From Mobula birostris (taxonomy: Eukaryota): a stretch of DNA of 64,000 nucleotides. Position 1 is the stretch's first letter. Each line of letters begins with the position of its first letter. The notes beneath the pieces were generated by a model, which saw nothing but the letters and a program-made list of their open reading frames with translations, was not told the origin of the DNA and ran no database searches. Shown one piece after another: positions 1,440 to 45,650 of this stretch. The translations under genes and the position numbers were made by a program. The DNA lies in NCBI RefSeq assembly GCF_030028105.1, contig NC_092377.1, forward strand, positions 126,684,242 to 126,748,241. The letters run 5' to 3'.

Positions 1440-2050
1440 CAGTCCTCTCAAAATGAATGCTAACATTGCATTTGCCTTCCTCACCTCTTGACTCAACCTA
1501 TACGTTAATGTTTAGGGAATCATGCATGAGGACACCCAAGTCCATTTGCATCTTAGATTTTTGAATTCTCTCCCCATTTAGAAAATAGTAATTTCTTAGG
1601 CCATTCTCCTAATCAGTACAAGTCTTCAGTCTCCCTGCTACCTCAATTCTATCTGCCCCTCCACCCTTCTTTATACCATTGTCAAACTGGGGCACAGAAC
1701 CAATTCTGTCATCCAAATGATTTATATACAACGTGCAAAGAAACACTCCCTAAAACAACTGGCACAGACCACTAGAGACCGGCAGCCTTAATTCCCACTC
1801 TTTGCCTCCTTCCAATAGCTAATGCTGTATCCATGCTAGTTCTTTTCCTGTCATACCATGGATTCTTATCTCTTATCTTATCTTAACATGTGCAGCACCT
1901 TGTCAAAGGCCTTCTGAAAATCCAAGCACAACATCCACAGATTATCCTTTGTCTATCCTGCTTGGTATTTCCTCAAAGAATCCCAAGAGATCTGTCATGC
2001 TAGGCTTTCCCTCAAGCAAACATATGCTGACTGTGGCCTGTTTGATCATG
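1440..2050 (-). mobile_element. CR1-type LINE RT fragments
   Basis: The reverse strand contains decayed CR1 ORF2 motifs, e.g. ttggattttcagaaggcctttgacaaggtg (LDFQKAFDKV). Confidence 0.6.
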
Positions 2051-2061
2051 TGCCTCCGAGT

Positions 2062-3598: not shown

Positions 3599-3828
3599 AT
3601 ACCGTGCGGTGATTGTTGAAGTGGGGTTCCCGGTGCGGGAGTCGTGTTGCGGTGAGGTGTGCAGGCGTGGGGTGGGGGTGGGGGTGGGGTGAAGAGCCTG
3701 TGTAGCGAAACAGCTGAACCGACGCCGGAGGATCTACCTGGAACGCGACCTGTCACTACCGAAGGAAGCGGGAGGTTGAGTTAGGAACTGGACCGTCGGG
3801 AGGAATAGTGACAGAAAGCGTCGGGGCA

Positions 3829-4040
3829 AAACACACAAAATGCTGGAAGACCTCAGCAGGTAGCATATATGGAAGTGAATAAACATTCGATGTTTGGGGC
3901 CGAGAGGCTTGCTTTCCAGTCCTGCTGAAGGGTCTCTGCCCCAAATATCGAATGTTTACTCTTTTCTATAGATGCTATCTGGCCTGCTGAGTTCCTCCGC
4001 ATTTTGTGTGGTTGCTTGGAGTTCCAGTTTCTGCAGGTTT
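3829..4040. mobile_element. Penelope pseudo-LTR inverted-repeat (hairpin) element
   Basis: Arm cacacaaaatgctggaagacctcagcagg pairs with arm cctgctgagttcctccgcattttgtgtg. Related arms recur at about 16390-16570, 52200-52250, 52960-53110, 55940-56290 and 63830-63950. Confidence 0.75.
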
Positions 4041-4453
4041 TCTCGACTTAGTGAAACGTGTGAACGACAGAAAGTTAACGAGACTTGTAAAGCTAATCGA
4101 AAGAATCGCCAAACATGCGATAAACTACAAAAACATGATAGTGAAAAAATAATCTAAAAAGCAAATCTTTGCATGAACCTTAAGGTGTTCGGTATAGGTA
4201 TGAAGTTTCGCTTGGGTGGATGCTCAGCTTGTGCAGAACGCCTCGGGGAATGGAACATTCAATGCCACTGTACGTATAGCCTACATTAGAATAAGGAACT
4301 ACTTTACGTTAGATAATGCATGTGTTGAGTTATACTTGTGCGTACGGAGTACGCCGTAGGGCTGATTACTTTTGTGTAGCCCTACGCCGTAGCGAGCATG
4401 CGTAGGTGTGTCTGCGTCGCTCTGAATGCGCGCAATCCGCGTAGGTCACTTGC

Positions 4454-7325
4454 AAATACAAAATAAACTGCAGATGCTGTAAAAGGTCAAAGCAACTCTT
4501 TCAGTACGCTGGATGAACTCAGCAGGTCGGGCAGCATCAATCGAAACGATGAGTCGATGTTTCGGGCCGGAACCCTTCGTCAGGACGGAAGAATGAAAGA
4601 TAGGGAAGGATTTAGTCATAGTCATAGTCATACTTTATTAATCCCGGGGGAAATCGGTTTTCGTTACAGTTGCTCCATAAATAATAAATAGTAATAGAAC
4701 CATCAATAGTTAAATAGTAATATGTAAATTATGCCAGTAAATTATGAAATAAATCCAGGACCAGCCTATTGGCTCAGGGTGTCTAACCCTCCAAGGGAGG
4801 AGTTGTAAAGTTTGATGGCCACAGGCAGGAATGACTTCCTATGATGCTCTGTGTTGCATCTCGGTGGAATGAGTCTCTGGCTGAATGTACTCCTGTGCCC
4901 ACCCAGTACATTATGTAGTGGATGGGAGACATTGACCAAGATGGCATTCAACTTGGACAGCATCCTCTTTTCAGACACCACCGTGAGAGAGTCCAGTTCC
5001 ATCCCCACAACATCACCGGCCTTACGAATGAGTTTGTTGATTCTGTTGGTATATGAAGAATGCTTGTAGCGTCAGTTGAGGGACCAGTAATTTGAAAGAC
5101 AAAGGGATGGGGGAGGGGAAGCAATGACGTCATAGCCCTGAAAACATTGGGTGGTAGAAGAAGGAGGTGGAACCATGAGGGAGTTGGGAGAGGGGGTAGA
5201 GTGAAATAGGGTTAGAGGAAGGGAGGGGGAGGGAATTACCAGAAGTTGGAGAATTCTATGTTCATACCAAGGGGCTGGAGACTACCAAGACGGTATATGA
5301 GGTGTTGCTCCTCCAGTCTGAGTTTAGCCTCATCATGGCAGTAGAGGAGGCCATGTATGGACATATCTGAATGGGAATGGGAAGCAGAGTTGAAGTCGGT
5401 GGCTGCCGGGAGATCCTGTCTGTTGTGGCGGACGGAGTGGAGATGCTCGACGAAGCGGTCCCCCAATCTGCGTCGGGTTTCACCGATGTAGAGGAGGCCG
5501 CACCGGGAGCACCGGATGCAATAGATGACCCCAACAGACTCACAAGTGAAGTGTTGCCTCACCTGGAAGGACTGTTTGGGGCCCTGAATCGTTGCAAGAG
5601 ATGAAGTGTAGGGACAGGTGTAGCACTTACGCTTACAGGGATAAATGCCAGGTGGGAGATCAGTGGGGATGGACGTGTGGATAAGGGAGTCGTGGAGGGA
5701 CCGATCCCTGCGAAAAGTGGAGAGGGGTGGAGAGGGAAGGATGTGCTTAGTGGTGGGGTCCTGTTGAAGGTGGCGGAAGTTGCAGAGGATAATGTGCTGG
5801 ATCCGGAGGCTGGTGGAGTGGTATGTAAGGACAAGGGGAACACTGACCCTGTTGTGGTTGCGGGAGGATGGGGTGAGGGCCGAAGTGCGGGAAATGGAGG
5901 AGATGCAAGTGAGGGCATCATTGATGATGGTAGAAGGGAAACCACGATCCTTAAAGAAAGACGACATTTGAGATGTCCTGGAATGGAAAGCCTCATCCTT
6001 GGAGCAGATGCGGCGGAGACAGAGGAACTGGGAATAGGGAATGACATTTTTGCATGTGGTGGGGTGGGAAGAGGTATAGTTGAGGTAGTTATGAGAGTCA
6101 GTAGGCTTGTAGAAGATGTCAGTGGACAGTCTGTCTCCAGAGATGGAGACCGAGACATTGAGAAAGGGGAGAGAAGTGTCCGAGATAGACCAAGTGAATT
6201 TGAGGGCTAGGTGGAGGTTAGAAGTAAAGTCGGTGAAATTGACGAGCTCAGCATGGGTGCAGGAAGCAGCACCAATGTAGTCGTCAATGTACCGAAGGAA
6301 AAGTTGGGGAGCAGTACCAGAATAGGTCTGGAGTACAGACTGTTCCACATAACCAACGAAGAGGCAGGCGTAGCTGGGTCCCATGTGAGTTCCCATAGCT
6401 ACACCCTTAGTCTGAAGAAAGTGGGAAGAGCCAAAAGAGAAGTTATTAAGTGTGAGAACCAGTTCTGCCAACCGAAGGAGGGTAGTGGTGGTGGGGAACT
6501 GGTGAGGTCTATTATCCAGGAAGTAGCGGAGGGTTTTGAGGCCTTCTTGATGGGGAATGGAGGTGTATAAGGATTGGACATCCATAGTAAAAATGTAGTG
6601 GTTGGGACCAGGGAATTGGAAGTTATTGAAGAGATGGAGGGCATGGGATGTTTCCTGGATGTAGGTGGGGAGGGACTGAACTATGGGTGACAAAATGGAG
6701 TCCAGGTAGGCAGATACAAGTTCGGTGGGACAGGAGCAGGCAGAAACTATGGGTCTACCGGGACAGTCAGGCTTGTGGATCTTGGGGAGGAGGCAAAACC
6801 GAGCAGTATGGGGTGCGGGAATTATGAGTTTAGTGGCTGAGGATGGAAGGTCTCCTGAGTTGATAAGGGCGGTGATGGTACGGGAGACATTAGTTTGATG
6901 TTTTCTGGTGGGGTCCTGTTCCAGGGGTAAGTAAGAAGAGGTGTCAGAGAGCTGCCGTTTTGCCTCAGTGCGGTAGAGGTCCGTCCGCCAGACTACTACG
7001 GCACCACCTTTGTCAGCAGGTTTGATGGTGAGGGTGGGATTAGTGCAGAGAGAGTGGAGGGCAGTGTGTTCAGAGGGAGTGAGGTTGGAACAGGAGAGAA
7101 GAGTGGTGAAGTTGAGACGGTCGATGTCTCAGCGCCAGTTGGAGATGAAGAGATCGAGTGCAGGTAGAAGGCCCGGGCGGGGTGTCCAGGAGGAGGAGGA
7201 GGGTTGAAGACAGGAGAAGGGGTCATCTATAGCGGGAGGGGAATCCTTGCCAAAGAAGTAGGCTCGGAGATGTAGGCGACGGAAGAAGAGTTCAGTGTCA
7301 TGGCAGGCACGGTATGATAGGTATG
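4454..7325 (-). mobile_element. Penelope-like retroelement, 5'-truncated, RT + GIY-YIG endonuclease
   Basis: ORF 5236-6693 has RT motifs (GVAMG, FLRYIDD) and GIY-YIG (GVIYCIRC...YIGET). The N-terminal part (KPADKGG, LLPKIHK) extends to ~7310 with one stop and one frameshift. Flanked by 13-bp direct repeat GTAGGTCACTTGC at 4441-4453 and 7326-7338. Confidence 0.95.
4613..5049 (-). mobile_element. Rex1/Babar-type LINE 3' end inserted in the Penelope 3' end
   Basis: Encodes SHPLH...RSTFSQRL...RKSFLPVAIKLYN, followed by AATAAA and an (ATGACT)n tail. Confidence 0.75.
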
Positions 7326-7887
7326 GTAGGTCACTTGCGTAGGTTACCGCGTCGAGTTAACGCAGAAGTATAATCATTCACCGCCAAAGCGCTAGTTGGC
7401 TGTGGGGTTTCTATGCCACTGTGAGTTTCTTCGTGAGGGCAAGGAAATGCATTTCAAATATTATCGGATGTCGGCAGGTAGAGTTGATGATTTGGTTCGT
7501 TGTCTCCAACCATTTATTTCGCGTCAGGGTACAGACTTGATGGAGAAAAGCAACCGGAAATGCATAGGAGGAAATGCGATGCTACGAAGCGGACCAATAT
7601 CAATTGTTGCGGTCTGTGTCGCCAGGACGCGTGATTGCGAGGTGCACATCATCCTACGGCATACATTTGATGCTGAAGTATAAATTGGGCTTAAGGCGCG
7701 TATTGCTATGTGTGTGTGTGTGTGTGTGTCAAGTTCGGACTCTAACAGTAAAGAACCATGAAACTTAGTTCCCGTTTCCAGCGTTTTCATTAATAACATA
7801 GTTATGTAAACAGGCCACATACACAACAAATTGGTGATGAGAATTATGAACCTACATCTTATCAGAACGCCGTGTTTTAGTTGATAA

Positions 7888-8893
7888 TGTCACGTACCCC
7901 GTGACGGGAATAAAGAACCAGCAGAGATGGAAAACACTTTGGAGTCCAGTATTGCTATTAACTAATAATATTTATTAGTAACTATGCAATACAGTAATAT
8001 AAATGTAAATAAATCAAACAGGTTAGCAATGATTATATAGAATAATATATAATATGCAAGTATATCTGTAAGTGTGGAAATATATGTATGAAAAACCAAG
8101 CTTCTTTAAGTCTAGGGGTAAAAAGATATGCTCTTACGATGATGAGTAAAGTTCAGTTCAGTTCAGTTTGTGGTATTTCGTTGAGTAGTGATGGGGAGAG
8201 AGAGAGAGAGAGAGAGAGATTTGAGTCTTCAGGTGAGCTGATGCAGTCAATCTTCTCGTTGTCCTTCAAAGTCCTTTAAAAGTCACCGACTGTGACTTTA
8301 ACAAAGGGGACCGGTTTTCTGTGGTGGAGCTATCCCCCAGGCGAGGGTGGACACATGGACAACTCCCCACCAGTCAACCCTTTTCTTTTCCACTGCAAGA
8401 GCAATGGATCAATCTGCCTGATCGATTCTCCAAAACCCACTTTTTCTTCGGGCACAACAATGCTCATTCAGTGTCCCGATCATGTGTCTGAGGTCTATCA
8501 TCTGACCTCCTATTTTATCTTCCCGTGCTGAGCATCAACTGTCACTCAAATAACTCCTCCTTCCTCTCTCTGTGAAGAAAATGCAAGCAGGCAAAAGTCC
8601 TTGAAGAAGTATCAATAACCTGCCGAAAATCATAACATCAATTGTCCATTTAATAACGCCCTCGGTCACCATAGCAACTTACGAGCTGCTCGGTGCTATC
8701 TCCACTTTAGCAGAAATCCAAAAGTTAACGAGTTCTTTCTCGTGCCTTAAAGTGACAGTCCAACAGTCAGTCTTTGTCTCTCTCTCTTCAAAACAAGATA
8801 TCGATGTTAAATATCTCTCTCTCTCTTTTCAAAAGCACAGTTAATAGGGGTAATCGAGCACAGTTCAAAGGGGTAATTCAGGACCCCGTCACA
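7888..8893 (-). mobile_element. Solo LTR with 4-bp TSD ATAA; family of the 43.6-45.6 kb Gypsy
   Basis: TGTCAC...GTCACA termini; ATAA at 7884-7887 and 8894-8897; sequence matches the reverse complement of the LTR pieces at 43611-44308 and 45421-45650. Confidence 0.9.
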
Positions 8894-9071
8894 ATAATGA
8901 CACTCAGAAAAGAGAGAGAAGGGAGATGGAAAGGAGTGACACACACATCTAGACGGAGTGCGCTCATTGCGCTAGCAAAAAGGACACGTGAGTCAAGTGA
9001 AACGTGCAATGACGTGTCCCTGAAACGTGTAAAGAAAACAAGGAAAAACGGGCTAAATTATCATAACAAAG

Positions 9072-12000
9072 ATGGCGATGATTGGAGTCATTACAGTATT
9101 TGATAGTGGCATTGAAAACTGGGTAACTTACATTGAAAAAGTGGAGTTATATTGTGATGCTAACGGTGTTAATGATGAAAAGAAAGCCAGCGTCTTACTC
9201 AGTGTTATGGGAGCAAAAACATAGGGGCTGCTACGGAGCTTGTCAATCCCTGAGAAGCCAGCTGACAAAACGTTCAAGCAAATAGTAGACACTCTCAAAA
9301 CAGCATTCAAACCCCAAACCACTGGTAAATATTGTTGAAAGATTTAAATTTCACAAACGGAATCAGAGCAAAAATTAAAGCATTTCTGAATATTGTGCTG
9401 AGTTGTGCAAATTATCAGAACATTAACAGTTTGGAGCTGGTCTATCGGACACATTGAGGGACAGGTTAGTGTGTGGCCTGCACTGTGAAACCACACAGAA
9501 GAACCTTCTGTGTGAAAAAGACCTTACATTAGAGAATGCGCTAGAAATTGCAATATCACTGGAAATGTGCAGCACGGGGTGCTTCAAAGATACAACAAAA
9601 ATCTCTGGAATATGCTGCAAGTAAAATGTCACTGAACAGAAATGAAGGGAAGCAATGTAACCGCTGTGGGAGCATGTCACATGACCCAGAGGACTGCTAG
9701 TTTAAAGACAAAGAATGCAGAAACTGTGGCAAACAGGGCCACATTGGCAGAGTATGCAAAGCTAGTAAACAGCAGAAAAAGAACAAAGTACAGGGAAACA
9801 AGAAACCCCAGAAAGGGAAACACAACAGTACACAAAATGAAGGAAAGCAGTTCTGATGAAAATGACTCAGACAAAAGTGAATTGTCTTGTCTGCAACTTC
9901 ACAGTGTGAAAGAGACAGATGATCGAAGAGTAATATGGATCACTCCACAAGTGGCAGGCACGAGACTGAAAATGGAGTTGGACACAGGCTCAGCTTTAAC
10001 AGTGATCTTTGCATACGACTACAAATGACTGCCTCTCACATACCTCTGCAACAAACGAAACTACTGCTAAAGACTTACACAGGACAGGGAGTGTGTCCCA
10101 AAGGTAAAATTAAAGTGACAGTGACCTACAGAGACAAAACACAGCAGCCGAACCTCTATGTACTGAAAAATGGAGGACAACCATTGCTGGGACGTGAATG
10201 GCTCAGGAAAATCCAGTTGGATTGGCACACCATCAAGGCACTAGATGTGTCAGCAAAGGAGGGCAGCAAGGCTACATCTGAGAGACTGTCACAAATTCTT
10301 GCTGACTCTGAGGAAGTTTTCATGAAAGGAACAGGAACACTTCAGGGCATGAAGGCAAAGACTGAGATTGAGGAAAATGCATGTCCAAAATTTCACAAAG
10401 TCAGACCAGTGCCATCTGCAATCCATCCACAGTACAGGCAGAGCTGAAAAATCTGGAGCAGACTGGGGTCCTGCCAAAGGTGAGTTAGAGTGAATGGGCC
10501 ATGCCTATTGTTCCAGTGATGAAGAAAACCTCCAGCACAAAACCAGGAAAACCAAGCAGTGTGGGCATATATGGAAACTTTAAAGTGACTGTTAATCCAG
10601 TTCTCCGCACAGTACAGTATCCTCTACCTTGTATTGAGGACATCTTTGCTTCTCTCTCAGGAAGGGAACATTTCACAAAAATCAATTTGGCCCAGGCTTA
10701 TCTCCATACGAAAATTGATGAAGCATCTAAGAAATGGCTGAAATAAATGCACACAAAGGACTTTATCAGTACAATAAGTTGCTGTTTGGGATAGCATCAG
10801 CTCCTGCAATCTGGCAAAGGGCAATGGACCAGGTTCTGCAGGGGATTCCAGGGCCCAGTGTTACCTAGATGACATCATTGTCACCAGCAAAGATGACGAC
10901 AAATATATTTCTAAACTTGAACAAGTGCTCACCAGGTCATGAGAATATGGGCTCAGAGCTAATCAACAGAAATGTGAGTTTTTCAGAAGGAAATCTCATA
11001 CTGTGGGCATGTGATCAACAAGGATGGCCTACATATGTCTCAAGACAAGATAGAAGCGGTGCTTAGGCACCACCACCTGAAAATGTGTCGCAGCTGAGAG
11101 CATATCTTGGTCCAGTGAACTGTTACCACAAGTTCTTGCCTAACCTATCCACAGTCCCACACCCACTAAATGTACTATTACAGACAGGGACACGATGGAA
11201 GTGGACTGAGAGCTGTGAGAGAGCGTTTGAAGAAACTAAAACACTCATAACTTCAGAAGGGGTGCTCGCACAATTTGACCCCTCTTTACCAATCCGACTG
11301 GCTTGTGATGCCTCACCCCATGGGATAGGAGCTGTGTTATCGCACAAGTTTCCAGATGGCTCAGAAAGACCAATAGCCTTTGCCTCGAGAATGCTAACTT
11401 CAGCTGAACGCAACTACGCACAGATTGACAGAGAGGCCCTAAGCCTCATTTGGGGATTCAAGATATTCCATCACTACCTGTATGGTCAAAAGTTTACCCT
11501 GTTGACTGACCATCAGCCTCTCGTGTCAATCTTCAACCCAAGAAAAGGCGTTCCAGTGATGACACAGTGATGACAGTGATGATTGAACACAAGGGGACCA
11601 AGCAACATGGTAACGCAGATGGCTTGTCACGTTTACCACTACTGACTTCTGCAATAACTACACAAATGGATTCAGCAGAGGTCTTTCACACAATAGGTGA
11701 ACAAACAGCCTCATTGAAAGAGAAACACGCAATGACCGTATGTTGTCAAAAGTGTATGACATCACGGTAAAGGGATGGCCAGCACATGGAAACACTGTTT
11801 CCAGCCTTCTCAGCAAGGAAGGAACAGTTGTCAGTGTGTCGGCGAACAGTAATATGTGGTTAAATGAAGACAATCACATCGGAAAATACCATTACAGTTC
11901 TGAGGGCCATGTTCGCCAGGAATGGCATACCAGAACAAATCTGCACAGACAATGGATGACAATTTGTCTCTGAAGAATTCCAAAGTTTTGTGAAGAACAA

Positions 12001-12643
12001 TGGAATCAAGAACTTTACATCGGCTCCTTACCATCCATCCACAAATGGCTTGGCAGAAAGATTTGTGCAGACATTCAAGAAAGCCCTCAAGGCAAGGGAC
12101 AGCGAAAATCAATCACTGCAACACAAGATACACAACTTCCTCCTTGCCTATCATGCAACCACTAATCAGACTCCAGCGATGATGTTTCTGAACAGGAACC
12201 TGAGATCCCGCATAGATCTTCTCAAACCAGATGTACGGCATGATGTGGAGAACAGACAGTTCAAACACTTGAACGCTAAGTCAACATGGAGCTTCAGTGA
12301 GGGACAGTCCGTTCTTGCACGTGATTACTCGACTGAAAAGTGGCAGCCGGGTACTATTTCCGCCATAGACAGGCCACTGATGTATACAGTGGAGGTGGGA
12401 GAGAACGTATGGAGACGTCGTGTGGACCAAATCCTGGATGCTCAGGTGAAAAACACAACACCTCATCCAGAATCCCCTGACATAGAAGCAAGCACTCCTC
12501 ATGTGACCACATCAGCCTCATCTACAGATAAGCCTGTCAGCAGTGCTGATGTATCAGTGGAGACTCACTCCCCAAAGCAAACGTTTCAGGACAGACGTTA
12601 CCCGGAGAGGCAGAGAAGGCCTCACCAGAGACTTGAGCTATAA
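9072..12643 (+). pseudogene. Gypsy gag-pol, frameshifted with stops
   Basis: Gag start MAMIGVITVFDSGIENWVTYIEKV; protease LKMELDTGS; RT PIVPVMKK, QYPLP and YLDDII; RNase H LACDASPHGIGAVL; integrase APYHPSTNGLAERFVQTFK. Confidence 0.92.
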
Positions 12644-29109: not shown

Positions 29110-32100
29110 CAGCACATAAACAGGGTTTTTGGTCCTTCTTGGCTACGCCGAACTATTTTTCTGCCTAGTCCCACTGAGCTGCACCTGGACCATATCCCCC
29201 CATACACCTCTCGTCCACGTACCTGTCCAAGTTTTTCTGAAATGTTAAAAGTGATCCCGTATTTACCACTTCATCTGGCAGCTCATTCCATACTCCCACC
29301 ACTCTCTGTGTGAAGAAGCCCCCCCCCAATGTTCCCTTTAAACTTTCCCCCCTTCACCCTTAACCCATTTCCTCTGTTTTTTTCCTCCCCTAGCCTCAGT
29401 GGAAAAAGCCTGCTTGCATTCACTCTATCTATACTCATCATAATTTTATATACCTCTATCAAATTTCCCCTCAAGTTGCTCAAGTCCCGGCAACATCCTT
29501 GTAAACCTCCTCTGCACTCTTTCAACCTAATTAATATCCTTCCTGTAATTTGGTGACCAAAACTGAACACAATACTCGAGGTTTGGCCTTACCAATGCCT
29601 TATACAACCTCGTCATAACATAACATTCCAACTCTTATACTCAATACCTTGATTAATAAAGGCCAATGTACCAAAAGCTCTCTTTAGGACTCTATCTACC
29701 TGTGATGCCACTTTTAGGGAATTTTGTATCTGTATTCCCAGATCCCTCTGTTCTACTGCACTCCTCAGTGCCCTACCATTTACCTTGTACGTTCTACCTT
29801 GGTTTCTCCTTCCAAAGTGCAATACCTCACACTTGTCTGTATTAAACTCCATCTCCCATGTTTCAGACCATTTTCCAGCTGGTCCAAATCCCTCCACAAA
29901 CTTTGAAAACCTTCCTCACTGTCCACTACACCACCAATCTTTCTATCATCAGCGAATTTGCTGATCCAATTTACCAATCATCCACATCATTGAGATAGAT
30001 GACAAATAACAATGGACCCAGCACTGATCCCTGTGGCACACCACAAGTTACAGGCCTCCACTCAGAGAAACAATCCTCCACTACCACTCTCTGGCTTAAT
30101 CCATTGAGCCAATGTCTAATCCAATTTACTACCTCTCCATGTATACCCAGTGACTGAATCTTCCTAACTAACGTCCCATGCGGGACCTTGTCAAAGGCCT
30201 TACTGAAGTCCATGTAGACAACATCCACTGCCTTCCCTTCATTCACTTTCCTAGTAACCTCCTTGAAAAACTCCAATAGATTGGTTAAACATGGCGTACC
30301 ATGCACAAAGCCATGTTAACTCTCCCTAATAAGTCCCTGTCTATCCAACTACTTGTAGATCTTATCTCTTAGTACTCCTTCCAATAATTTACCTACTACC
30401 GACGTCAAACTTACTGGCGTATAATTTCCCAGATTACCTTTAGAGCCTTTTCTAAATAACGGAACAACATGAGCTATCCTCCAATCCTTCGGCACCTCAC
30501 CCGTAGATACCGATATTTTAAATATATCTGCCAGGGCTCCTGCAATTTCAACACTAGTCTCCTTCAAGGTCCGAAGGAATACTCTGTCAGGTCCTGGGGA
30601 TTTATCTACTCTGATTTGCCTCAAGATAGCAAACACCTCCTCCTCCTCAATCTGTATAGGTTCCATGACCTCACTACTTGTTTGCCTTATTTCCATTGAC
30701 TCCATGCCAGTTTCCTTAGTAAATACAGACACAAAAAACCCATTTAAGATCTCCCCCATTTCTTTTGGTTCCATAGATAGCCGACCACTCTGATCATCAA
30801 GAGGACAAACTTTATCCCTTACTATCCTTTTGCTCTTAATATACCTGTAGAAGCTCTTTGGATTATCCTTCACCTTGACTGCCATAGCATCCTCATGTCT
30901 TCTTTTAGCCCTCCTGATTTCTTTCTTAAGTTTTTTATTGCACTTTCTATACTCCTCAAGCACCTTATTTACTCCCTGTTTCCTATACATGTCATACATC
31001 GCTCTCTCCTTCTTTATCAGAGCTCCAATATCACTTGAGAACCAAGGTTCCTTATTCTTATTCACTTTGCCTTTAATCCTGACAGGAACATACAAACTCT
31101 GCACTCTCAAAATTTCTCCTTTGAAGGCCTCCCACTTACCAATCACATCCTTGGCAGAGAACAACCTGTCCTAATCCACGCTTTTTTGATCCTTTCCCAT
31201 TTCTTCAAACTTGGCCTTTTTCCAGTTTAGAACCCCAACCCGAGGCCCAGATCTATCTTTATCCATGATCAAGTTGAAACTAATGGTGAAATTAATTGAT
31301 CGTTGGAACCAAAGTGTTCCCCTACACACACTTCTGTCACCTGTCCTAAATCATTTCCAAATAGGAGATCTAATATTGTATCCTCTCTAGTTGGTACCTT
31401 TATATATTGATTTAGAAAACTTTCCTGAACAGATTTTACAAACTCTAACTCATCTAGACCTTTAATAGTATGGGAATCCCAATCAATATGTGGAAAATTA
31501 AAATCCCCTACTATCACAACTTGATGTTTCCTGCAGTTGACTGCTATCTCTCTGCAGATTTGCTCCTCCAATTCTCGTTGACTATTGGGTGGTCTATAAT
31601 ACAACCCCATTAATGTGGTCATACCTTTCCTGTTTCTCAGCTCCACCCATATGGCCTCGGTAGACAAACCCTCTAATCTGTTCTGCCTGAGCACTGCTGT
31701 ACCATTTTCCCTGACTAGCAATGCCACCCCCCACCCCTCATTCCTCTGGCTCTCTCACGTCTGAAACATCGGAATCCTGGAACATTAAGCTGCCAGTCCT
31801 GCCCCTCCTGAAGCCAAGTTTCACTAATGGCTATAATGTCGTAATTCCATGTGCCAATCCATGCCCTCAGCTCGTCAGCCTTTCCCACAATACTCCTCGC
31901 ATTGAAATAGACACACCTCAGAAGGTTATTACCGACACACACAACCCTTCTATTTGTGACTTTGCATGAATTTTTAACGTCATTTATATTCACCCCCGCT
32001 CCACTATCTGCTCTGGCACTCTGGTTCCCATTCCCCTGCAAATCTAGTTTAAACCTACCCCAAAAGCAGTAACAAACCTCCCTGCAAGGATATTGGTCCC

Positions 32101-36324: not shown

Positions 36325-37610
36325 CTATTCCACCCGCCCCCCACCCCCCCCCCACTTCGATGGAACGGTGTTATGAGTTTCCGGACGGTCAGGTACAGTC
36401 CGGCCCCCGGACAGGACGTCAGACAGTGAAAGGGGACCTGACTTTCGCTGCCGCACCTTCCTGTCCCGGCTGAGCGGCCGCAGCTCCTCTCGTGTCGGGT
36501 GTCCGGAGCGCCAGCGCTCGACCCCGAGAGGAAAGCAATTCCAGAGGGATCGGCTGGTCCCAACCGAAGAGGAGAGCTCGCCTGGCGGGGAAGGGAGCGA
36601 CAGATCGGAGCCGCTGACTGAACTCAGTGGACAGCCTATGAGCAGGTGGAGAGTGAGGAGGTGATGGCGGCCCGGAGCTCTATGAGTATCTGCCTGTCTC
36701 TCCGTCTCCATTAACCCTAACCATTCTTTCTGTCTCCCCACATCTCCATGACCCCATCTCCCTCCCTCTTTCTCTTCATCGCTCTCGCTCTTACTCTTTC
36801 CCTCTCTCTGTGTCTTGTCACCCTGATCTGAATCACAAAGATGGCGATTCTCGGTGCAGATCAGTTTGAACGTCTCTGCTGAGGAACCACAGCGGGAGGG
36901 GCGGTGAGGAGACAGGGCAAGTGAGGGATCGCACGACCAGTGTGGTAACTCAGGAGAAAGAGGTTCCCGTACCCATTTGTATAACTGGCGGGTCATCTTC
37001 CGGTGCCCGGGATCATGTAGTGCAGGTGACACCCGGTAGCACTGAAATAAATCGGGTGGGAGTGTTGTCACAGAGTCCGCACCACACACAGTTACTGTAC
37101 TGCGGAACGGAGCTGGCCTGCCAGTGTGCGGTCAGTGAATTAGTCACAGCGAAACACAGGAGAGGGGGAGACGTGGTGAACAGGATGTGGTGTAGATGAC
37201 ACCAGGCGGAGGTGGGGGATGTGAGTGAGGGTGCAGGAAAAGCGAGGGAGCAGAGAGAAAGGGGCAGTGTGAGGAGGAGAAAAGTGAAGAAGAGGAGGAT
37301 GGGGTGAAGAAGAGAGAGGGAAATATATAAGGAGGGAGTGTGGGCTGAAAAAATATCTTGGGGTAGTAGGAGGAAGAGAGCCTGAGATTGGAAACGAGAG
37401 AGAGAAACAGAGGGCAGAAAATGAGAGAAAGAGAGAGAGAAACAAATGTAGATTGGAAAGGGACAGGTTGAGGAAGGTTTACGGCGGATGCGATCTGAAA
37501 GACTCTTCACACGGCCTTGGATTACGAGGACAATACAAATACCTGTGACAGGATGCTGGTCTCTGTTGGAAGAACGGCCGATTTGCTGCCTGTCGTATTG
37601 GGGCTAGCCC
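36325..37610 (-). CDS. Putative unassigned gene C: exons 37543-37610, 36822-37117 and 36325-36581
   Basis: Three AG...GT exons after pyrimidine tracts join in frame (phases 0/2/1) to about 205 aa; AATAAA on the minus strand at 36270-36275. No recognisable domain and no start exon found. Confidence 0.3.
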
Positions 37611-37819
37611 ACTGGGCGCAGAGGGAGAGGGAGAGGGAACTGAGAGGACTGTGTGGTAAATGAAGCCGGCGTCTATATGGGAGATGGTAATGTCATGGCT
37701 ACGGATAGAAGGTTTGCGTAGGGGATCACGGGGAGAGTTGGGGACGGTTATTGGCCAGAGGTTGCCAGTCTTTGGACCTCGTCACCCTCTGCACCTTCCC
37801 CTCCATCCCGGTGTTTCAG

Positions 37820-38095
37820 ACGCTCCCTCACTACCCTCTTCCTCACCACACGCTCGTTAGGGACTCCGAGTAGCTCCTACGTGAGAGTCCACAGCGATGT
37901 TCGGGGGATGATGGACCTACGGGCTTTGATCTACTCCTAATCGATTAGTTTATCCGTGAGCGATCCCGGCTGGGTGCAGCCTTCACTGAAACTGAGATTG
38001 GCTCCGGGACTCCCTCCACCTCGCCTTCTCCCACCGAGCCACTCTAACACCGACCACTGACTGGCATCCCGAATGGCAGCCGCTGCTCCGAGGTT
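37820..38095 (+). pseudogene. Decayed third copy of the VJ-type V exon
   Basis: Aligns with the 40319 and 41855 exons and their upstream intron. First Cys codon TGC>AGC; TAC-CGC-TGC (YRC) > GAC-CAC-TGA at 38052-38060; internal deletions. Confidence 0.8.
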
Positions 38096-38152
38096 TCAGC
38101 AGAATTCCGGTAATCCACAATCCAGTTGTTCAGGGCCCTGATGCTTCAAGAT

Positions 38153-38490
38153 ACCCGTTTCTCGCTCCCTTTGAACCCACCGAGGTCCATTTCCCGCTCC
38201 TTTTTCAACCCACCACGACCCCGTTTTCCGCGCCCTTTAAACCCACCGAGACCCGTTTCCCGCTTCATTTAACCCCATAGGGATTAGTTTCTCCCTCTCG
38301 TTAAACCGACCGGGACCCGCTTCCCGCTCCACAACGCACAGTTTGATTCTCTCTCTGCAAATCCACCGAAACCATTTCCCGCTCTTTTTAACCCACAGGG
38401 ACCAGTTGCTCGCTCCCTTTAAACCCACTGGACCCGTCTGCCGCTCCCTTTAAAACCACAGGGACCCAATTCGTTGCTCCCTTTAAACTG
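38153..38490 (+). repeat. Degenerate ~31-bp tandem repeat (core cccgctccctttaaacccac)
   Basis: About nine imperfect copies are visible. Confidence 0.75.
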
Positions 38491-39302
38491 AACTAATTCA
38501 ATATATAAATAATATTCTCTGCGTGAAAGATCATTTCAATGTGCTGTGCCAGGCAGCCCACCGGGCAGTTTCGCCACTTAGGATGCCCACAACTTACTAA
38601 GATTGCTTTCAAGACCAGCGTTATTTGTCATATGGACATGGAAATAGACAGTGAAATGGGTTGTTTGCATCGATGACCAACACATTGCCAGGATTGTACT
38701 GGGCCCGCAAATGTCTCCATGCCTCCCGTGCCAACATAGCCTGTGCAAAACTGACTAATCTGTACCCGTACGCCTTTGGAATTTGGGAGGAAACCGGAGC
38801 ACCCGGAAACCCAAATGTTTGGGCAGCGACGGGAATCGAAACCGGATTATCCTCGAAATGACGTCTTCCTGCAGAGTTACGGTTGTTTATCAAACAATTT
38901 TGGTGTAGTATGATCAAATTCGGAGAGAGATTGTAGATGACAGGTTTGCAAAGGGGGCTTTTCAGTTCTGTGCAAAATTACAGCAACGTTGGACAGAGGA
39001 AACAAGTAGTGTGTGTGTGTGGGGGGGGTGGGGGTGTGACGGGAGGGGGTTGCACATCAGTTGATGTACAGATTCGAGCAGGTCCACAGCTCCCTGAATG
39101 AGACAACGTGTGCATGGGGTGGTGAAAATATGTAACTGGTAACTTGGTTTATCATTGTCACAGTGAAAAACTTTGTTCTGCACGTCAGTCCAGATCATTT
39201 CACTACAGCAAAGTATTTCGTCCCTTCGTCCGCCGACACTTGCTAAGGTGTTTCTTTATGCGTCCTCAGAGCTGTGTTAATTGAAAATACTTTGACTATG
39301 CG

Positions 39303-39351
39303 ATGATGAGGGCGCAGCTCCGAAAACTGATCTTGCTCCTTCTGCTACTGG
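39303..39351 (+). CDS. VJ-type receptor exon 1: leader MMRAQLRKLILLLLLL, phase 1
   Basis: ATG, Leu-rich signal peptide, donor G|gtaaga. Confidence 0.85.
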
Positions 39352-39382
39352 GTAAGAGAACCTCTCTTTCTGCTCGGGACAC

Positions 39383-39390
39383 GTGTGTGT

Positions 39391-39469
<79 letters not shown>
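39383..39469 (+). repeat. Compound (GT)n(GA)n microsatellite in intron 1
   Basis: Directly visible. Confidence 0.95.
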
Positions 39470-39473
<4 letters not shown>

Positions 39474-40318
39474 AGAAAATGACCGAAAGATTCTGTGTCT
39501 GTGTGGCCCGTTCCCCATAGAGTGACAGTATGCATGAAGGGTCGGAGTGTTGGGAAGAATTTCCGTCGTTTCGGGGTGAAGGAGTTAGGCTGTCAATGTA
39601 GAGAAGAAGAAGAAGGGGTGTGTGTTGTTGACAGGGGAGTGTCATGGATTCGGGAAAGGTCATTGGTTACGGGGAGAGGTGCTGGTTGATATTGAGCAGA
39701 GGTTGCCTGACTTTGAGCTGTTTTGGACGCCGCATCCGGGTCACTCTCTGCACCGCTCCGCTCCCTCCCGGTGATACAGACGCTCCCTCACCACACTTGT
39801 CTCTATCTTCCCCAACTCTTACCATTATCACTGGTTGTAACGTGGTCTGATGGAAAATTCTCCCCACGTGCCCAAAGATTTACCTGTATTTACACCCTTC
39901 AATATCCCTTTAAAACTCTAACATAACTCATACCCCAGAACTCTCCCTGATGGGTCACTGTTTGATACCTGGACAAACGCCTCGCCTTCCCCACACAAAC
40001 TTGTATTAATCACGATCTACTCTCCAGGCTGGAGACTTGTACTCATTCAACTTTCTCAAATCGGTTCCACTCCGGGTTAACACCATGTTGTCTGGCAGAC
40101 TTCCTTTTTATTTAGCACATACCAAGGACGAATCATGTTTAACTCTTTCCTTACAATTTGAGATCACTCCACGTTTACTCTCTGCCCCTCCCAACCTCTA
40201 CCCTCGCTACTCTCTCCCTATCTCCTTGTGTTACAGACGCGCCCTCTCCACTCTCTCTCTGTACCACTCTCCATGTGTTACGGACGCTCCCTCACTATTC
40301 TCTCTCACTGTGTTACAG

Positions 40319-40678
40319 ACAGCTCCCTCGCCACCCTCTCCGTGTCCCAGTGGCCTCGGAGGTTGGAGGTCCCGAGTGGCTCCAACGTGACGCTGCACTG
40401 CGAAGTTCTGGGGCTGACGGAGCCCCGGGTGATAATCTACCCCTATTGGGTGATCGGCGGGACGGAGGAGGGGGAAGAAGAACGTGTCGTCTACCCGCCC
40501 CCACAAGAAACCCGGCGGGAAGACGCCCTACCTGAGAGTGAGATCGGCACGGGACTCTCCCTCCAACTCCGGCACCTCCGCCCGAGCCACTCCAACACCT
40601 ACCGCTGCCTGGCGTCCGTTCACCTTCCCGACCGGCGGCTGCTGCTCCGAGGGAACGGGACCGTGCTCCTGGTACGAG
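40319..40678 (+). CDS. VJ-type receptor V exon 1 (NKp30/NCR3- or XMIV-like IgV)
   Basis: 360-nt phase 1-1 exon: VSQ...VTLHC...YW...LSLQLRHLRPSHSNTYRC...GNGTVLLVR, with a germline J-like GxGTxLxV motif; donor G|gtgagt. Confidence 0.9.
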
Positions 40679-41854
40679 GTGAGTCTCCGGTCCCACTACC
40701 CTTGTTCCCCACTAGCTGCCCCCAGATTCCCGCTTCCCTCCTGGGATCCGATCCCATATCATGTTCAGTTTTAATATATATAATTTTCCTGACTTGCTGG
40801 GTTAGATCCCAGTCTCTAACCGGCTCACGAGTAGTGTATCTGTGTATCTTTGGATAAATTGTGTAAGTCTGAGGGGATGAGGGAGCTGGAGAATTGTTGT
40901 AGGAGAGAGGGAGGAGGGGACGCCTGAGGAGGAGAAGGAAATGTCATGGATACGGGTGGAATGGGAGGAGGGATATGGGGAGAAGTGGGAGGGTTAGGCA
41001 GAGTTTGCCCGATTTGGGGCTGTGTTTGCGTAACGATAATTGTTTAAAATGTCGTTCTGTGGTCTTTCCTGATGCAGCAATAAGCATTCCGGTCTATATT
41101 TGCACACAAAGGGGACAACTGTACACATGTTAAACGACAATAAATTGTTTTACTAGGGTTATATAAACATGCAATGCAAAAAGGAAAACGAAGGGTTAAT
41201 GATGTCGCCAAAAACAAACACTTCTCGTCCACTGAACGAACTGATCTGCAGATGCCGGAAGGAATCACAGATACCACAAACTTTCAGTTCTTTCCCTCTC
41301 TCTCTCACTGGACGTAATTGTCTCTATCTTCGCCAACTCTTAAACCATTATCACTGGTCGTAACGTGGTCTGATGGAAAATTCTCCCCACTTGCACAAAG
41401 AAAACCCGTATCTACACCCTTCAATATCCCTTTAAAACTCTAACAGAACTCATACCCCAGAACTCTCCCTGATGGGTCACTGTTTGGTACCTGAAAAAAG
41501 GCCTCGCCTTCCCCACACAAACTTGTTTTAATCCATGATCTACTCTCCAGGCTGGAGACTTGTACTCATTCAACTTCCTCAAATCAGTTCCACTCCGGGT
41601 TAACACCATGTTCTCTGGCCGACTTCCTTTTTATTTTGGCACATACCAAAGACGAATCATGTTTAACTCTTTCCTTAGAGTTTGAGATCACTCCACGTTT
41701 AATCTCTGCCCCTCCCATCCTCTTTCTCTGTACAGACGCTCCTTCACTACTCCCTCCCTCCCTGTGTTTCAGACCCTCCCTCACTACTCTCTCCACTTCT
41801 CTCCATGTGTTACAGACGCTCCCTCAACATTCTCCCTCTCTCACTGTGTTACAG

Positions 41855-42214
41855 ACATCTCGCTCGCCACCCTCTACGTGTCCCAGTGGCCTCGGAGGTT
41901 GGAGGTCCCGAGTGGCTCCAACGTGACGCTGCACTGCGAAGTTCTGGGGCTGACGGAGCCCCGGGTGATAATCTACCCCTATTGGGTGGTCGGCGGGACA
42001 GAGAACGAGGGAGAGGAACGTATCGTCTATCCGACTCCCGAGGGATCCCGGCAGCAAGATGCTCTACCTGAGAGCGAGATCGGCACGGGACTCTCCCTCC
42101 AACTCCGGCACCTCCGACCGAGCCACTCCAACACCTACCGCTGCCTGGCGTCCGTTCATCTTACCGACCGGCGGCTGCTGCTCCGAGGGAATGGGACCGT
42201 GCTCCTGGTACGAG
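41855..42214 (+). CDS. VJ-type receptor V exon 2 (tandem duplicate)
   Basis: 360-nt phase 1-1 exon, 14 aa different from V1; intact splice sites. Confidence 0.9.
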
Positions 42215-42466
42215 GTGAGTCGCCGGTATCTCTCCCCTCGTTCACTTTTCACCGCCGCTTACATGATTCCTCCTGGGATTGGATCGCAGGTCCAGTTTTG
42301 TTATTTCATATATAACCCCTCCCCCAGAACGCTTGGATTAGATCCCAGCCTGTAACCCACTCCCAGCAATGTTATTCTCTATATAAACCCCTGAAACCTC
42401 AGAATACATCCCATCCTTAGTTCGCCTCGGTGAACCGTCTCACTCTGAACTCCGATTTACTCTCAG

Positions 42467-42621
42467 GTTCTCCTCGGGAGCCACTGCCTTTTTACATCCT
42501 GCTCGTCCTGAAGGCGCTCGCTCTCCTAGTCCTGACCACCGTGTACCGGCTCCCAAAGAGCAACAGCGAACCAGCGCACCGAGCGCCCACTGGCGGTCGT
42601 TCCGTAAAGTGCGGACTCTGA
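42467..42621 (+). CDS. VJ-type receptor TM/cytoplasmic exon with TM lysine
   Basis: Acceptor gatttactctcag|; GSPREPLPFYILLVLKALALLVLTTVYRLPK...KCGL*; short tail without ITIM or ITAM. L-V1-V2-TM CDS is 924 nt (307 aa). Confidence 0.85.
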
Positions 42622-43610
42622 GGCGACAGCGACAGTGGAGAAAAAGCCCCATCACTGCTGGCGGACCCAGGACACCTCCCTAAGTACGTCCTCCTGCGGC
42701 CTGGACTGTGCCAGCAACCAGCTTTCTCCTACCGACATCTCACTGTCAGGAGAGACCAACAAATTTCCGACAGACCAAAGGACGTCCTTCATCGAGCCGA
42801 TGATCTTCCAGTAGAATTTGATGCCCGTCTGTGTGTGACCTGGGAAATAGTCTGTTTCTCAGCGAATCCTTCGTTTCACAGCTGACAGAGATTAACCCGA
42901 TCACAGCCGTCCCGAAGGTAACGTGTTGTGGTAATGATAGAGGAAGGTTCCTACCGGGAGGGACATTTTCAGCTCGGCCTAGCGATGTCTTTGTGCTTGT
43001 TACTGCGATCAGGCGATGAGGCGTTCTGCCGTTTGCTCAGCGATTCACCCCATGGCCTTTCGTTCTTAAATTCATAGTGAATGCTTTCATTAGTGTTCGA
43101 TTACATTCCTTAATAACATTTGGATCGTTGTCACTCTTGTACACTGCTACAGTAATTAAGGAGCTTCCTCACCCAACCCGGCCCCGCCCTCTCCAGTAGT
43201 GAAGGAACATTACACTGTGGCGCTTCCTCACCGAGCCCTGCGGTGCCTGAACCCGGCTTCAGCGCCTCCCTCAGCACGGTGTCTTGTCGCCATTCGGCAG
43301 CTCCCATCCACGGACATCTCGATGACCAATGAGGTCGGGCGGACCAAAGGCGCCTTTCACCGAGTTGATGATCTGCCGGCTGCAATTGATGTCCGTCTCC
43401 TTGTGTGTCCCTGCGAACAGCCCGGAGATGTGAGAGTCCTCTGTCACGCAACTGCTCGGGATGAACAATGAAACACGACTTCTCACCTCTCCACATCATT
43501 CAGTGCAGACTCTGCCGCCGCAAACACCTCCCGTCAGTCAATGCATTCCGGGTTCTTTCCTGCAGCGTCTGTCTGATCCATCCATCTGATTGGTTGTTGA
43601 TATTTCTTCA

Positions 43611-45650
43611 AGGACAGGTTGCCTGCTTGCATTCCTTTACAGACAAAGGAAGGAGGGACTCTTTGAGTGACAGGTGATGCTCAGCCTGGTGAAATAAATA
43701 GGAGGTCAGATGATACAGACCTCAGACACATGATCTGGACACTGAATGAGCATCGTTGTGCCTGCAGAGAAAGTGGGTTTTGGAGGATCGATCAGGCGGA
43801 TCAATACAAAATTGCCATTCCAACGGTGAAGAAGGGGTTGACTGGTGGGGAGTTGTCTATGTGTCCACTCTCGCCTGGGTGATAGCTCCACCACAGGAAG
43901 ACCGGTCCCCCTGGTTGAAGTCACAGTCGGTGACTTGTAAAGGATTTCGGAGGACGACGAGAAGATCGACGCCATCAGCTCACCTGAAGACTCAACTCAC
44001 TCTCTCTCTCTCTCTCTCCATCACTACTCAACTAAATACCATGAACTGAACTGAACTGAACTGAACTTTACTCAACATCGTAAGACTGTATCTTTTTACT
44101 CCTAGACTTAAAGAAGCTAGTTTTTTCATACATATATATTCCACACTTACTATTGTATATAATCATTGCTAACCTGTTTGATTTATCTGCATTTATATTA
44201 CTGTATTGCGTAGTTACTAATAAATATTATTCCTTTATAGCAATACGAGACTCCAAAGTGTTTTCCATCTCTGCTGGTTTCCTAACCCCTGTCACGGGGT
44301 ACGTGACACTTGTTAAAAGGATACGGGGTGTTCCTTTGACAGAGAGGGCTAAAGAGATATCAGCATTTGTGACACCATCTAGTCTGTATGAGTACAATGT
44401 TTTACACATCGGGATGAAAAATGCTCTGGGGACATTTCAAAGAATGGTCAGTTCTGTGATTGGAGGGTTAGAAAGCACAGGGTTTATATCAATGATTTAG
44501 TGGTCTGGAAGGACACGTGGGAAAAGTAGATTGCAGCTGTAGAAAAACAGTTTGACAAAACTTTCCAAGGCCAATCTTACTGTGAACCTCGCTAAAAGTA
44601 GGTTTGGTCATGCTACTGTTATTTATCTTGGCTATGCAGCAGGCCAGGGCCCCCTGGCTCCTGTACAGCCCAAGGTTCAAGCGATTGCTGAAGTTCCTGT
44701 TCCGACCGGCAAGGAAGCTTTAAGAAGGTTTTTAGGAATGGTTGGGTATTACTGTAAGTTATGTAAGATCTTTGCTGACATCGCTCTACCCCTAACAAAA
44801 CTCCTGGGGAAGAGTGAAAGATCTGTATGGAATGACCTTTGCCAGGAGGCATTTGAACATCTGAAAACCATCCTGTGCTCAAAGCACCAGATTTTTCCAA
44901 GCCATTTTCTATAGCAACAGACGCTAGTGACAAAGCTGCTGGGGCAGTACTGTTACAGGAAAGAGTGAATAACATTGAACATCCAGTAGCTTATTTCTCA
45001 AAGAACTTTAATGTACACCAGAAAAATTATTCAACTGTTGAAAAGGAATTACTAGCACTTATTCTGGCCTTACAACATTTTGAGGCCAATGTTAAAAAAA
45101 AAGACCTCGAAATCTTTCTGTTGCCCAGAGACCACTTGTAATTTACACGGATCATAATCCGTTGGTGTTTCTAACTAAAATGAAGGATAAGAATAGAAGG
45201 TTATTAAATTGGAGTCTGATATTGCAAGAATTTGATCTGACAATCAGACATGTGAAAGATACTGACAATATTATAGCTGATTAGTTATCCAGATATTAAG
45301 TTGGAAATTGTACACATTTTTGCTCTGTCATCTAATGATTTTATCTGTACTTTCAAACTCTGTACTTTACATTTAGACAAAAAAAATTCATCGTCAATTT
45401 TTTTTTCTGAAGAAAGGGAGTGTGACAGAATCCTGAATTACCCCTATAAATTGTGCTCGTTTACCCCTATTAACTGTGCTTTTGAAAAGAGAGAGAGTTA
45501 TTTAACATCGATATCTTGTTTTGAAGAGAGAGAGAGAGAGACGAAGACTAACTGTTGGACTGTCACTTTAAGGCACTGGAAGTAACTTTTGGATTTCTGC
45601 TGAGTTGGAGAGAGAGATGGCACCGAGCAGCTCGTAAGTTGCTATGGTTC
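43611..45650 (+). mobile_element. Internally deleted Gypsy (probably Gmr1-type, IN upstream of RT) with partial LTRs
   Basis: LTR 3' part 43611-44308 is fused to RT (VPLTERAKEISAFVTP). RNase H (ATDASDKAAGAVL, YSTVEKELLAL) ends ~120 bp before PPT aagaaagggag and the LTR start TGTGACA at 45421. Confidence 0.85.

Follow-up and report, generated by a model that had tools for sequence, protein, structure and literature searches.

A predicted adaptor-coupled receptor with tandem VJ-type domains in the giant manta ray

A stretch of 64,000 nucleotides (nt) from the giant manta ray, Mobula birostris (contig NC_092377.1, positions 126,684,242–126,748,241; hereafter the window), contains an intact gene of four exons. 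Its product is a type I membrane protein with two tandem variable (V) domains, each joined in the germline to a joining (J)-like motif, and with a lysine in its predicted transmembrane helix. We consider it probable that this protein is an adaptor-coupled, activating-type receptor and that it belongs to a small shark-and-ray family which gained extra V exons in stingray-type rays.

Gene structure and V domains

All coordinates are positions in the window; exons were read directly and the proposed exons were spliced in silico. Exon 1 (39303–39351, + strand, 49 nt, by direct reading) comprises the start codon, the signal peptide MMRAQLRKLILLLLLL and the first base of Asp17. It ends at a phase-1 donor (GT at 39352), and its product is the N-terminus of the RefSeq protein P0008 without a single difference. 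Exons 2 (40319–40678, +) and 3 (41855–42214, +), each of 360 nt and phase 1-1, encode the V-set domains V1 and V2 and are bounded alike by a ttacag acceptor and a GTGAGT donor. V1 is supported by Pfam, alignment with V and J of T-cell receptor (TCR) alpha and assembled contigs, and V2 by Pfam and contigs. The coding part of exon 4 (42467–42621, +; direct reading, an AlphaFold2 (AF2) model and contigs) supplies the stalk, the transmembrane helix FYILLVLKALALLVLTTVY with Lys272, the tail and the TGA stop. When the leader (L), V1, V2 and the transmembrane (TM) exon are joined, they form an open frame of 307 amino acids (aa), with neither a constant (C) domain nor a spacer between the two V domains; every part of this layout was found where the original prediction had put it. 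The L-V1-TM and L-V2-TM frames are open as well, at 187 aa each, so that both V exons are skippable in frame, as had been proposed from their phases. Contig cover reaches 43593, and the 3' untranslated region probably extends to at least about 43600. Intron 1 carries a compound (GT)n(GA)n microsatellite (39376–39470) directly after the leader, at which reads appear cut.

Both V exons match the Pfam V-set family (PF07686) above its gathering cut-off of 26 bits (V1, 32.0 bits, 1.5e-7; V2, 33.3 bits, 6.1e-8), and both also pass the cut-off of Ig_3 (2.9e-8 for V1). The Cys-Trp-Cys core is kept in each (C44/W60/C113 in V1, C164/W180/C233 in V2), and the AF2 model of a single V displays a nine-strand V fold with a pLDDT of 81. 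Each exon closes with the J-like GNGTVLLV, as the prediction had it, which fits the G-x-G-T-x-L-x-V pattern of VJ-type domains and, in a PDB sequence comparison, lines up with the J of TCR alpha chains. V1 and V2 are germline-joined VJ-type V-set domains, and the gene is non-rearranging.

Membrane anchor and signalling

A stalk of 8 residues precedes the AF2-predicted transmembrane helix (residues 265–283), which contains the anticipated lysine, K272, about 40% of the way along. The cytoplasmic tail has 24 aa and no tyrosine; it is short and free of immunoreceptor tyrosine-based inhibitory (ITIM), activation (ITAM) and switch (ITSM) motifs, in agreement with the expectation of a tail lacking ITIM and ITAM. 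The transmembrane lysine, the flanking PLP..Y and a K-S-x-S/T-x-P motif are invariant in a seven-sequence alignment that reaches from manta to catshark. Past KSNSEPAH, by contrast, the reading frame of the tail is shifted between the ray lineages Mobula and Hypanus. Since it is read in different frames, the distal tail is under no constraint and is not a signalling module, which fits signalling via a partner. The distal tail of the Hypanus orthologue, PVQFRNVRTLKGRRQWRSTAGG, has its match at 42585–42665 in another frame than that of the manta.

A mid-helix lysine is commoner among partners of DAP12 than among those of CD3-zeta or FcR-gamma, and the transmembrane lysine of SIRP-beta1 binds DAP12. 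Adaptor-coupled activating receptors of the immunoglobulin superfamily (IgSF), of the SIRP-beta, activating KIR and TREM type, combine a basic transmembrane residue with a short, motif-free tail, and both features are present here. Pairing of a basic transmembrane residue with FcR-gamma or DAP12 is established in other receptors (PMC4016189), and NKp30 pairs with CD3-zeta through a transmembrane charge interaction (PMC12272517). In the mechanism that we propose, the ectodomain would bind a conserved ligand, probably via the outer V domain, and the buried lysine would pair with the transmembrane aspartate in an adaptor dimer that carries ITAM or YxxM motifs and is of the DAP12, FcR-gamma or CD3-zeta type. 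The dimer would carry the signal, and the receptor would thereby activate the cell. The high conservation between manta and stingrays (84–86% identity over the whole protein) suggests that such a ligand may be conserved and probably endogenous. Of the activating receptor that had been predicted, the activating, adaptor-type design (basic transmembrane residue, motif-free tail) stands; the activating role itself is only what we infer. The description of the helix as TCR-like, with an ILLxK-type motif, found no statistical support, because the TM exon (50 aa) has no match at E≤10 among PDB chains, even though that library holds full-length TCR chains. The spacing here, ILLVLK, is one residue off from the ILLGK of TCR-beta.

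Transcripts

Contigs assembled from four public runs, which are RNA by guess, were placed on 37700–43600. Their cover spares the introns, and their joints are intron-precise with GT..AG borders: the joint from V1 to V2 (40678 to 41855) occurs in 4/4 runs and that from V2 to the TM exon (42214 to 42467) in three. For V2, contigs match the variable middle and the last 103 nt exactly and continue into the TM exon. In one V2-to-TM contig, the last 103 nt of V2 are identical to those of this gene, whereas the paralogue differs there at four codons; the last exon of the same contig shows four substitutions and, directly behind the stop, a 6-nt repeat-unit insertion, differences that a second allele would be expected to have. 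Moreover, both V domains are kept in all four RefSeq products of the gene and in the orthologues. The spliced contigs and the recurrence of this layout in three other species support L-V1-V2-TM as the main product.

Three side observations concern the same contigs. An extra GCGACA unit directly past the stop codon (42622) is present in contigs of three runs, and RNA-like contigs carry A>C at 42589, which changes Thr to Pro, the residue also found in the paralogue and in M. hypostoma; both differences are probably allelic variation. A repeat in the intron between V2 and the TM exon (42231–42427) reaches a contig depth of up to about 300, with joints that go back at about 42327–42366. This depth is repeat cover and not intron retention.

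Orthologues and sister gene

The spliced model is identical over 307 residues to RefSeq XP_072122256.1 (P0008; entries XP_072122256/57/58/60), a Mobula birostris 'uncharacterized protein', so that the two-V gene model is already known as an unnamed prediction. The original prediction had named, as a way in which it could fail, an already annotated single-V NKp30 allele: the gene is indeed annotated, and the annotated form has two V domains. A search with the V1 protein retrieved two-V proteins from Mobula hypostoma (95% identity), Hypanus sabinus (84%) and Hemitrygon akajei (86%), and the 90% cluster of the M. hypostoma protein includes two RefSeq proteins of Mobula birostris. When 1.84 billion cluster representatives were searched exhaustively with phmmer, 41 matched at E≤1e-3, four of them at E≤1e-10. 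The closest is a three-V protein of Hemitrygon (P0009, 450 aa), followed by a hypothetical protein of the catshark Scyliorhinus torazame (P0010, 175 aa, 41% identity), which has one V, the same stalk-TM-tail pattern and the same transmembrane lysine. As far as these sequences go, the family spans sharks and rays, with a single V in the shark as against two or three in the myliobatiform rays (Mobula, Hypanus, Hemitrygon), and members appear so far only in sharks and rays.

A sister two-V gene lies about 2.4 kb ahead of the window start. Its product (P0006, XP_072122252-54) has 306 aa and is 93% identical, and the 6568-nt gene is arranged alike, a single leader being followed by a series of phase-1 V exons and a single TM exon. 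M. hypostoma holds the same gene pair. For the M. hypostoma paralogue, isoforms with a retained intron and without the transmembrane region are predicted, and isoform X3 ends in another last exon, with the uncharged transmembrane segment VTVGVCVPVVVLLFLWCRMCGS; this terminal exon has no counterpart in the window.

Duplication of the V exon

The two V exons belong to a tandem duplication with a unit of about 1.5 kb. The first copy (39797–40707, +) takes in V1 together with about 520 nt of the intron before it and about 30 nt behind it, and the second (41318–42243, +) comprises the upstream intron, V2 and a short downstream flank. The copies are 89% identical over 931 columns (91% in the intron part alone) and are separated by a spacer of 610 nt of unique sequence (40708–41317). 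Between V1 and V2, 28 of 360 nt are different (92% identity) and 107 of 121 residues are the same. Their ratio of nonsynonymous to synonymous divergence (dN/dS) is 0.41, so that both copies are under purifying selection. The differences are concentrated in codons 44–72, the C'-C''-D segment, where dS is 0.49 and dN 0.21, against 0.07 and 0.016 in the rest of the exon, the counts per segment being small. Positive selection behind the V1/V2 differences was considered and rejected, as dS in codons 44–72 is raised along with dN (ratio 0.43). This joint increase, together with the 9% divergence of the duplicated intron, points to a mosaic history, in which the variable C'-C''-D block is older sequence spared by homogenisation and not the product of adaptive change. 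The extra V exons of stingray-type rays arose when this 1.5-kb unit of intron plus exon was duplicated in tandem, and partial homogenisation came afterwards.

In a tree of 16 V domains, the V2 domains of both paralogues and both Mobula species form one clade (95/98), and the Mobula V1 domains sort by gene across the two species. On the strength of this grouping, the order of events in Mobula was first the V duplication, then the gene duplication and last the species split. Stingray V domains of one gene cluster together (V1 and V2 of Hypanus; V1 and V2 of the three-V protein of Hemitrygon), which reflects either independent duplications or gene conversion.

Relationship to known V-domain receptors

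When the single-V AF2 model was searched against Swiss-Prot models, the matches were nearly tied. TCR alpha V came first (E 6.6e-8), then SIRP-alpha, IGSF3, TMIGD2 and CD7; TMIGD2 stands at rank 10 (25% identity, TM-score 0.70), and NCR3, the gene of NKp30, follows at ranks 26–28, human and macaque among them (22% identity, TM-score 0.64, E 4.9e-6). A PDB search with the single V that was independent of Foldseek placed skate IgNAR V, antibody V and TCR delta V at the top, with Z of about 12, and NKp30 was absent from the best 60 PDB chains both for the sequence and for the family profile. Twenty of the phmmer matches were looked up. Those named are NCAM2, hemicentin-like, PTGFRN-like, IGSF3-like, SIRP-beta-like and TMIGD2 proteins, unnamed V-C-TM proteins of paddlefish, coelacanth and gar are also among them, and none of the 20 bears the name NCR3. 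Likewise, a sawshark two-VJ protein (P0019) used as query reached no NCR3-named protein, and a search of the Atlas for look-alikes of the catshark relative returned generic V-set clusters only. Whole-protein structural matches (IGSF3, SIRPB2, JAMs, single-chain Fv fragments (scFv), diabodies) were rejected as a basis for family assignment (TM-score ≤0.33, root-mean-square deviation (rmsd) 12–31 Å); they reflect only the presence of two V domains. Kinship with NKp30 or XMIV did not emerge from these comparisons, in which NCR3 is found at ranks 26–28 among near-tied V domains and in none of the 20 names.

In NKp30, a VJ domain is followed by a short stalk, by a transmembrane segment whose basic residue serves to recruit an adaptor with ITAMs, and by a tail that is likewise short (PMC12272517). 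The manta protein shares with it a non-rearranging, single-exon VJ-type domain with a GNGT motif, the short stalk, the basic transmembrane residue and the short tail; it differs in having two V domains instead of one and Lys instead of Arg. Linkage to the MHC and the binding of B7-H6 are further hallmarks of NKp30. At 22% identity, human NCR3 is no nearer than the V domains of TCR, SIRP or TMIGD2. TMIGD2 (CD28H) has a single VJ-like V, is the sole named mammalian protein found by sequence (P0045, E 4.8e-4) and scores slightly above NCR3 in structure. However, its transmembrane segment is uncharged and it has a long signalling tail of its own, and the similarity is weak, with no tree behind it. 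SIRPB2 (SIRP-beta2) combines two Ig domains, a transmembrane segment and a short tail, and ranks second among the structural matches of the whole protein (Q5JXA9, E 2e-14); several sequence matches, moreover, are named SIRP-beta-like. Its identity is about 19%, though, and the high rmsd shows that the domain folds match but not their arrangement; the family is a different one. The novel immune-type receptors (NITRs) of teleosts and the variable region-containing chitin-binding proteins (VCBPs) of amphioxus likewise have non-rearranging, germline-joined V domains with J-like motifs. VCBP3 has two of them in tandem and is a structural match (2fbo, Z 11.4), and a NITR-named catfish protein (P0054) is a weak profile match (E 1.6e-5). 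NITRs, however, have a V-I layout and occur in bony fish, VCBPs are secreted chitin binders, and the sequence similarity to both is at the background level of V-set domains.

Antibodies and TCRs go back to the sharks and rays, the oldest animals to have them, and the non-rearranging VJ-type genes of this group are therefore followed with an eye to the origin of these receptors (PMC12227049). The relevance to antigen-receptor ancestry that had been suggested for this gene was not borne out: since many ordinary V-set receptors are as close to TCR or Ig as its V is, the gene has no special bearing on that question. It is an addition to a known kind of receptor, the adaptor-coupled IgSF receptor with VJ-type domains. 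What it contributes is a shark-and-ray family that is small and well conserved and whose history is clear, from one V in the catshark to two or three in stingray-type rays, and a testable activating-receptor design with an invariant transmembrane lysine. In practical terms, several 'uncharacterized protein' entries obtain a name and a functional hypothesis.

Alternative explanations

The most serious competitor, although in our estimate an unlikely one, is that the gene is a true NKp30 member or orthologue, a divergent shark NCR3 subtype with a duplicated V exon. The design is the same throughout, from the single-exon VJ-type domain with its GNGT J-like motif to the short stalk, basic transmembrane residue and short tail, and human and macaque NCR3 do occur among the structural matches. 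In addition, the passage of PMC12227049 that cites Kinlein 2021 reports eight divergent NCR3 subtypes in sharks, sequences outside the present comparison. On the other side, the NCR3 domains come after TCR alpha, SIRP, IGSF3, TMIGD2 and CD7 in the near-tied structural ranking, NKp30 lies outside the best 60 PDB chains, one of the 20 looked-up phmmer matches (of 41) is named TMIGD2 and none NCR3, and the basic residue is Lys, not Arg. A single VJ-type ectodomain, a feature of NCR3, is lacking in the manta and stingray proteins and present only in the catshark relative, and the V domain is not closest to NCR3, a comparison that is weaker than a tree and left shark NCR3 sequences aside. We regard it as improbable that the protein is a subunit or co-receptor, its lysine serving the assembly of a multi-chain complex (e.g. 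of the CD3 type), or that it has an adhesion role. The conservation between manta and stingrays, unusual for V domains (84–86% over the whole protein), would suit a fixed endogenous partner, and the structural searches have V domains of TCR and Ig at the top; yet similarity of the TM exon to TCR or any other solved chain was not detectable, and there is no C domain for chain pairing.

Two further alternatives concern the pair of V exons. Their alternative use, with L-V1-TM and L-V2-TM giving one receptor two binding specificities, had been offered in the original prediction, and we give it little credence. Skipping either exon would keep the frame, and the V1–V2 differences fall mostly in the C'-C''-D segment. 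However, Ig exons are as a rule of phase 1-1, which is in itself no pointer to skipping, the V1-to-V2 joint is present in all four runs, and the four RefSeq products and the orthologues all carry both V domains. Joints from L to V2 or from V1 to the TM exon were absent from the four runs, in which the leader exon is uncovered and contigs are blind to rare forms; only the V1-to-V2 and V2-to-TM joints were seen. That the tandem exons are an assembly artefact, e.g. haplotypes placed one behind the other, is scarcely credible. The copies are adjacent and 92% identical, as such an error would have it, but the same layout recurs in the assemblies of three other species and in a paralogue, V1 and V2 each have an M. 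hypostoma orthologue of their own, the spacer between the units is unique, and spliced contigs join V1 to V2 at GT..AG borders. The tandem arrangement is genuine, the occurrence in four species and the spliced contigs having ruled out the artefact.

The reading that we prefer, an adaptor-coupled activating receptor, has several points to its disadvantage. Adaptor coupling, an activating role and ligand binding are what we infer, and a transmembrane lysine can equally serve assembly with other partners. The family amounts to about 8 sequences, all of them computer predictions. The runs are RNA only by guess and their reads are assembled into contigs, from which neither isoform ratios nor the leader-to-V1 joint can be read, and the contigs with the V1-to-V2 joint could derive from the near-identical paralogue.

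Repeats and optional linkers

Two repeats of about 45 nt (family D2) with acceptor-like sites (tgtgttacag/acgctccctc) lie upstream of V1 (40208–40309, +), where they are out of frame or have their AG mutated to GG. The same two repeats lie upstream of V2 (41744–41841, +), and the proximal one provides an in-frame alternative acceptor. Its AG (41814–41815) is the only upstream acceptor of V2 that is both in frame and free of stops, and its use would extend V2 by a 13-aa linker, DAPSTFSLSHCVT (41816–41854, +). Annotated stingray proteins use a linker at the same position (13 aa in P0002 and P0003), and P0009 has a 37-aa linker ahead of its third V. In run X3, a contig joins V1 to a related linker of 17 codons whose letters are not those of this gene and which probably derives from the paralogue. 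In the present gene, the linker is a possible candidate.

A more speculative picture, to which we attach very little weight, is that a receptor with one V became, in the ray lineage, an expandable array of two or three V domains, in which the 45-nt repeats would serve as optional linkers of 13–37 aa. Linked VJ domains could then pair as a natural single-chain Fv, forming a germline antigen-receptor-like site whose C'-C''-D segments would be kept different by patchy gene conversion. The whole-protein model has two separate V domains, and its scFv and diabody matches have an rmsd of 12–20 Å; neither the model nor its structural matches gave a sign of V–V pairing within the chain.

Rest of the window

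Besides the two-V gene, no cellular genes were recognised in the window, only retroelements. These comprise a Penelope-like reverse transcriptase with a GIY-YIG domain (5239–6693, −), RNase H and integrase of a long terminal repeat element (9642–12643, +), and the endonuclease and reverse transcriptase of a long interspersed nuclear element (29971–31727, −). In the six reading frames of the window, a hidden Markov model scan picked up no other VJ-type exon, and an Rfam scan of 37500–43700 gave no match. About 1.2 kb upstream of the leader, a decayed V-exon relic (37781–38093) retains the acceptor-repeat motif and contains stop codons. It is 41% identical to V residues 2–40 and about 70% identical in nucleotides to the 3' half of V1 and V2, and is probably the leftover of a further V copy or a dead paralogue. 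The segment ttggaatttgggaggaaaccggagcacccggaaaccc (38764–38807, in the bin 38685–38881) attains a summed contig depth of about 1,900–9,100 over the four runs and is flanked on either side by many loose ends; it looks like the conserved core of an abundant repeat of the short interspersed nuclear element type and has no Rfam match. Other long open reading frames in the window, retroelements aside, have no Pfam match. One of them (2652–3572, +; 306 aa), likewise unmatched in Pfam, consists of a proline-, serine- and glutamine-rich repeat, ..PQASSLRTQDPRP.., and is probably a translated tandem repeat.

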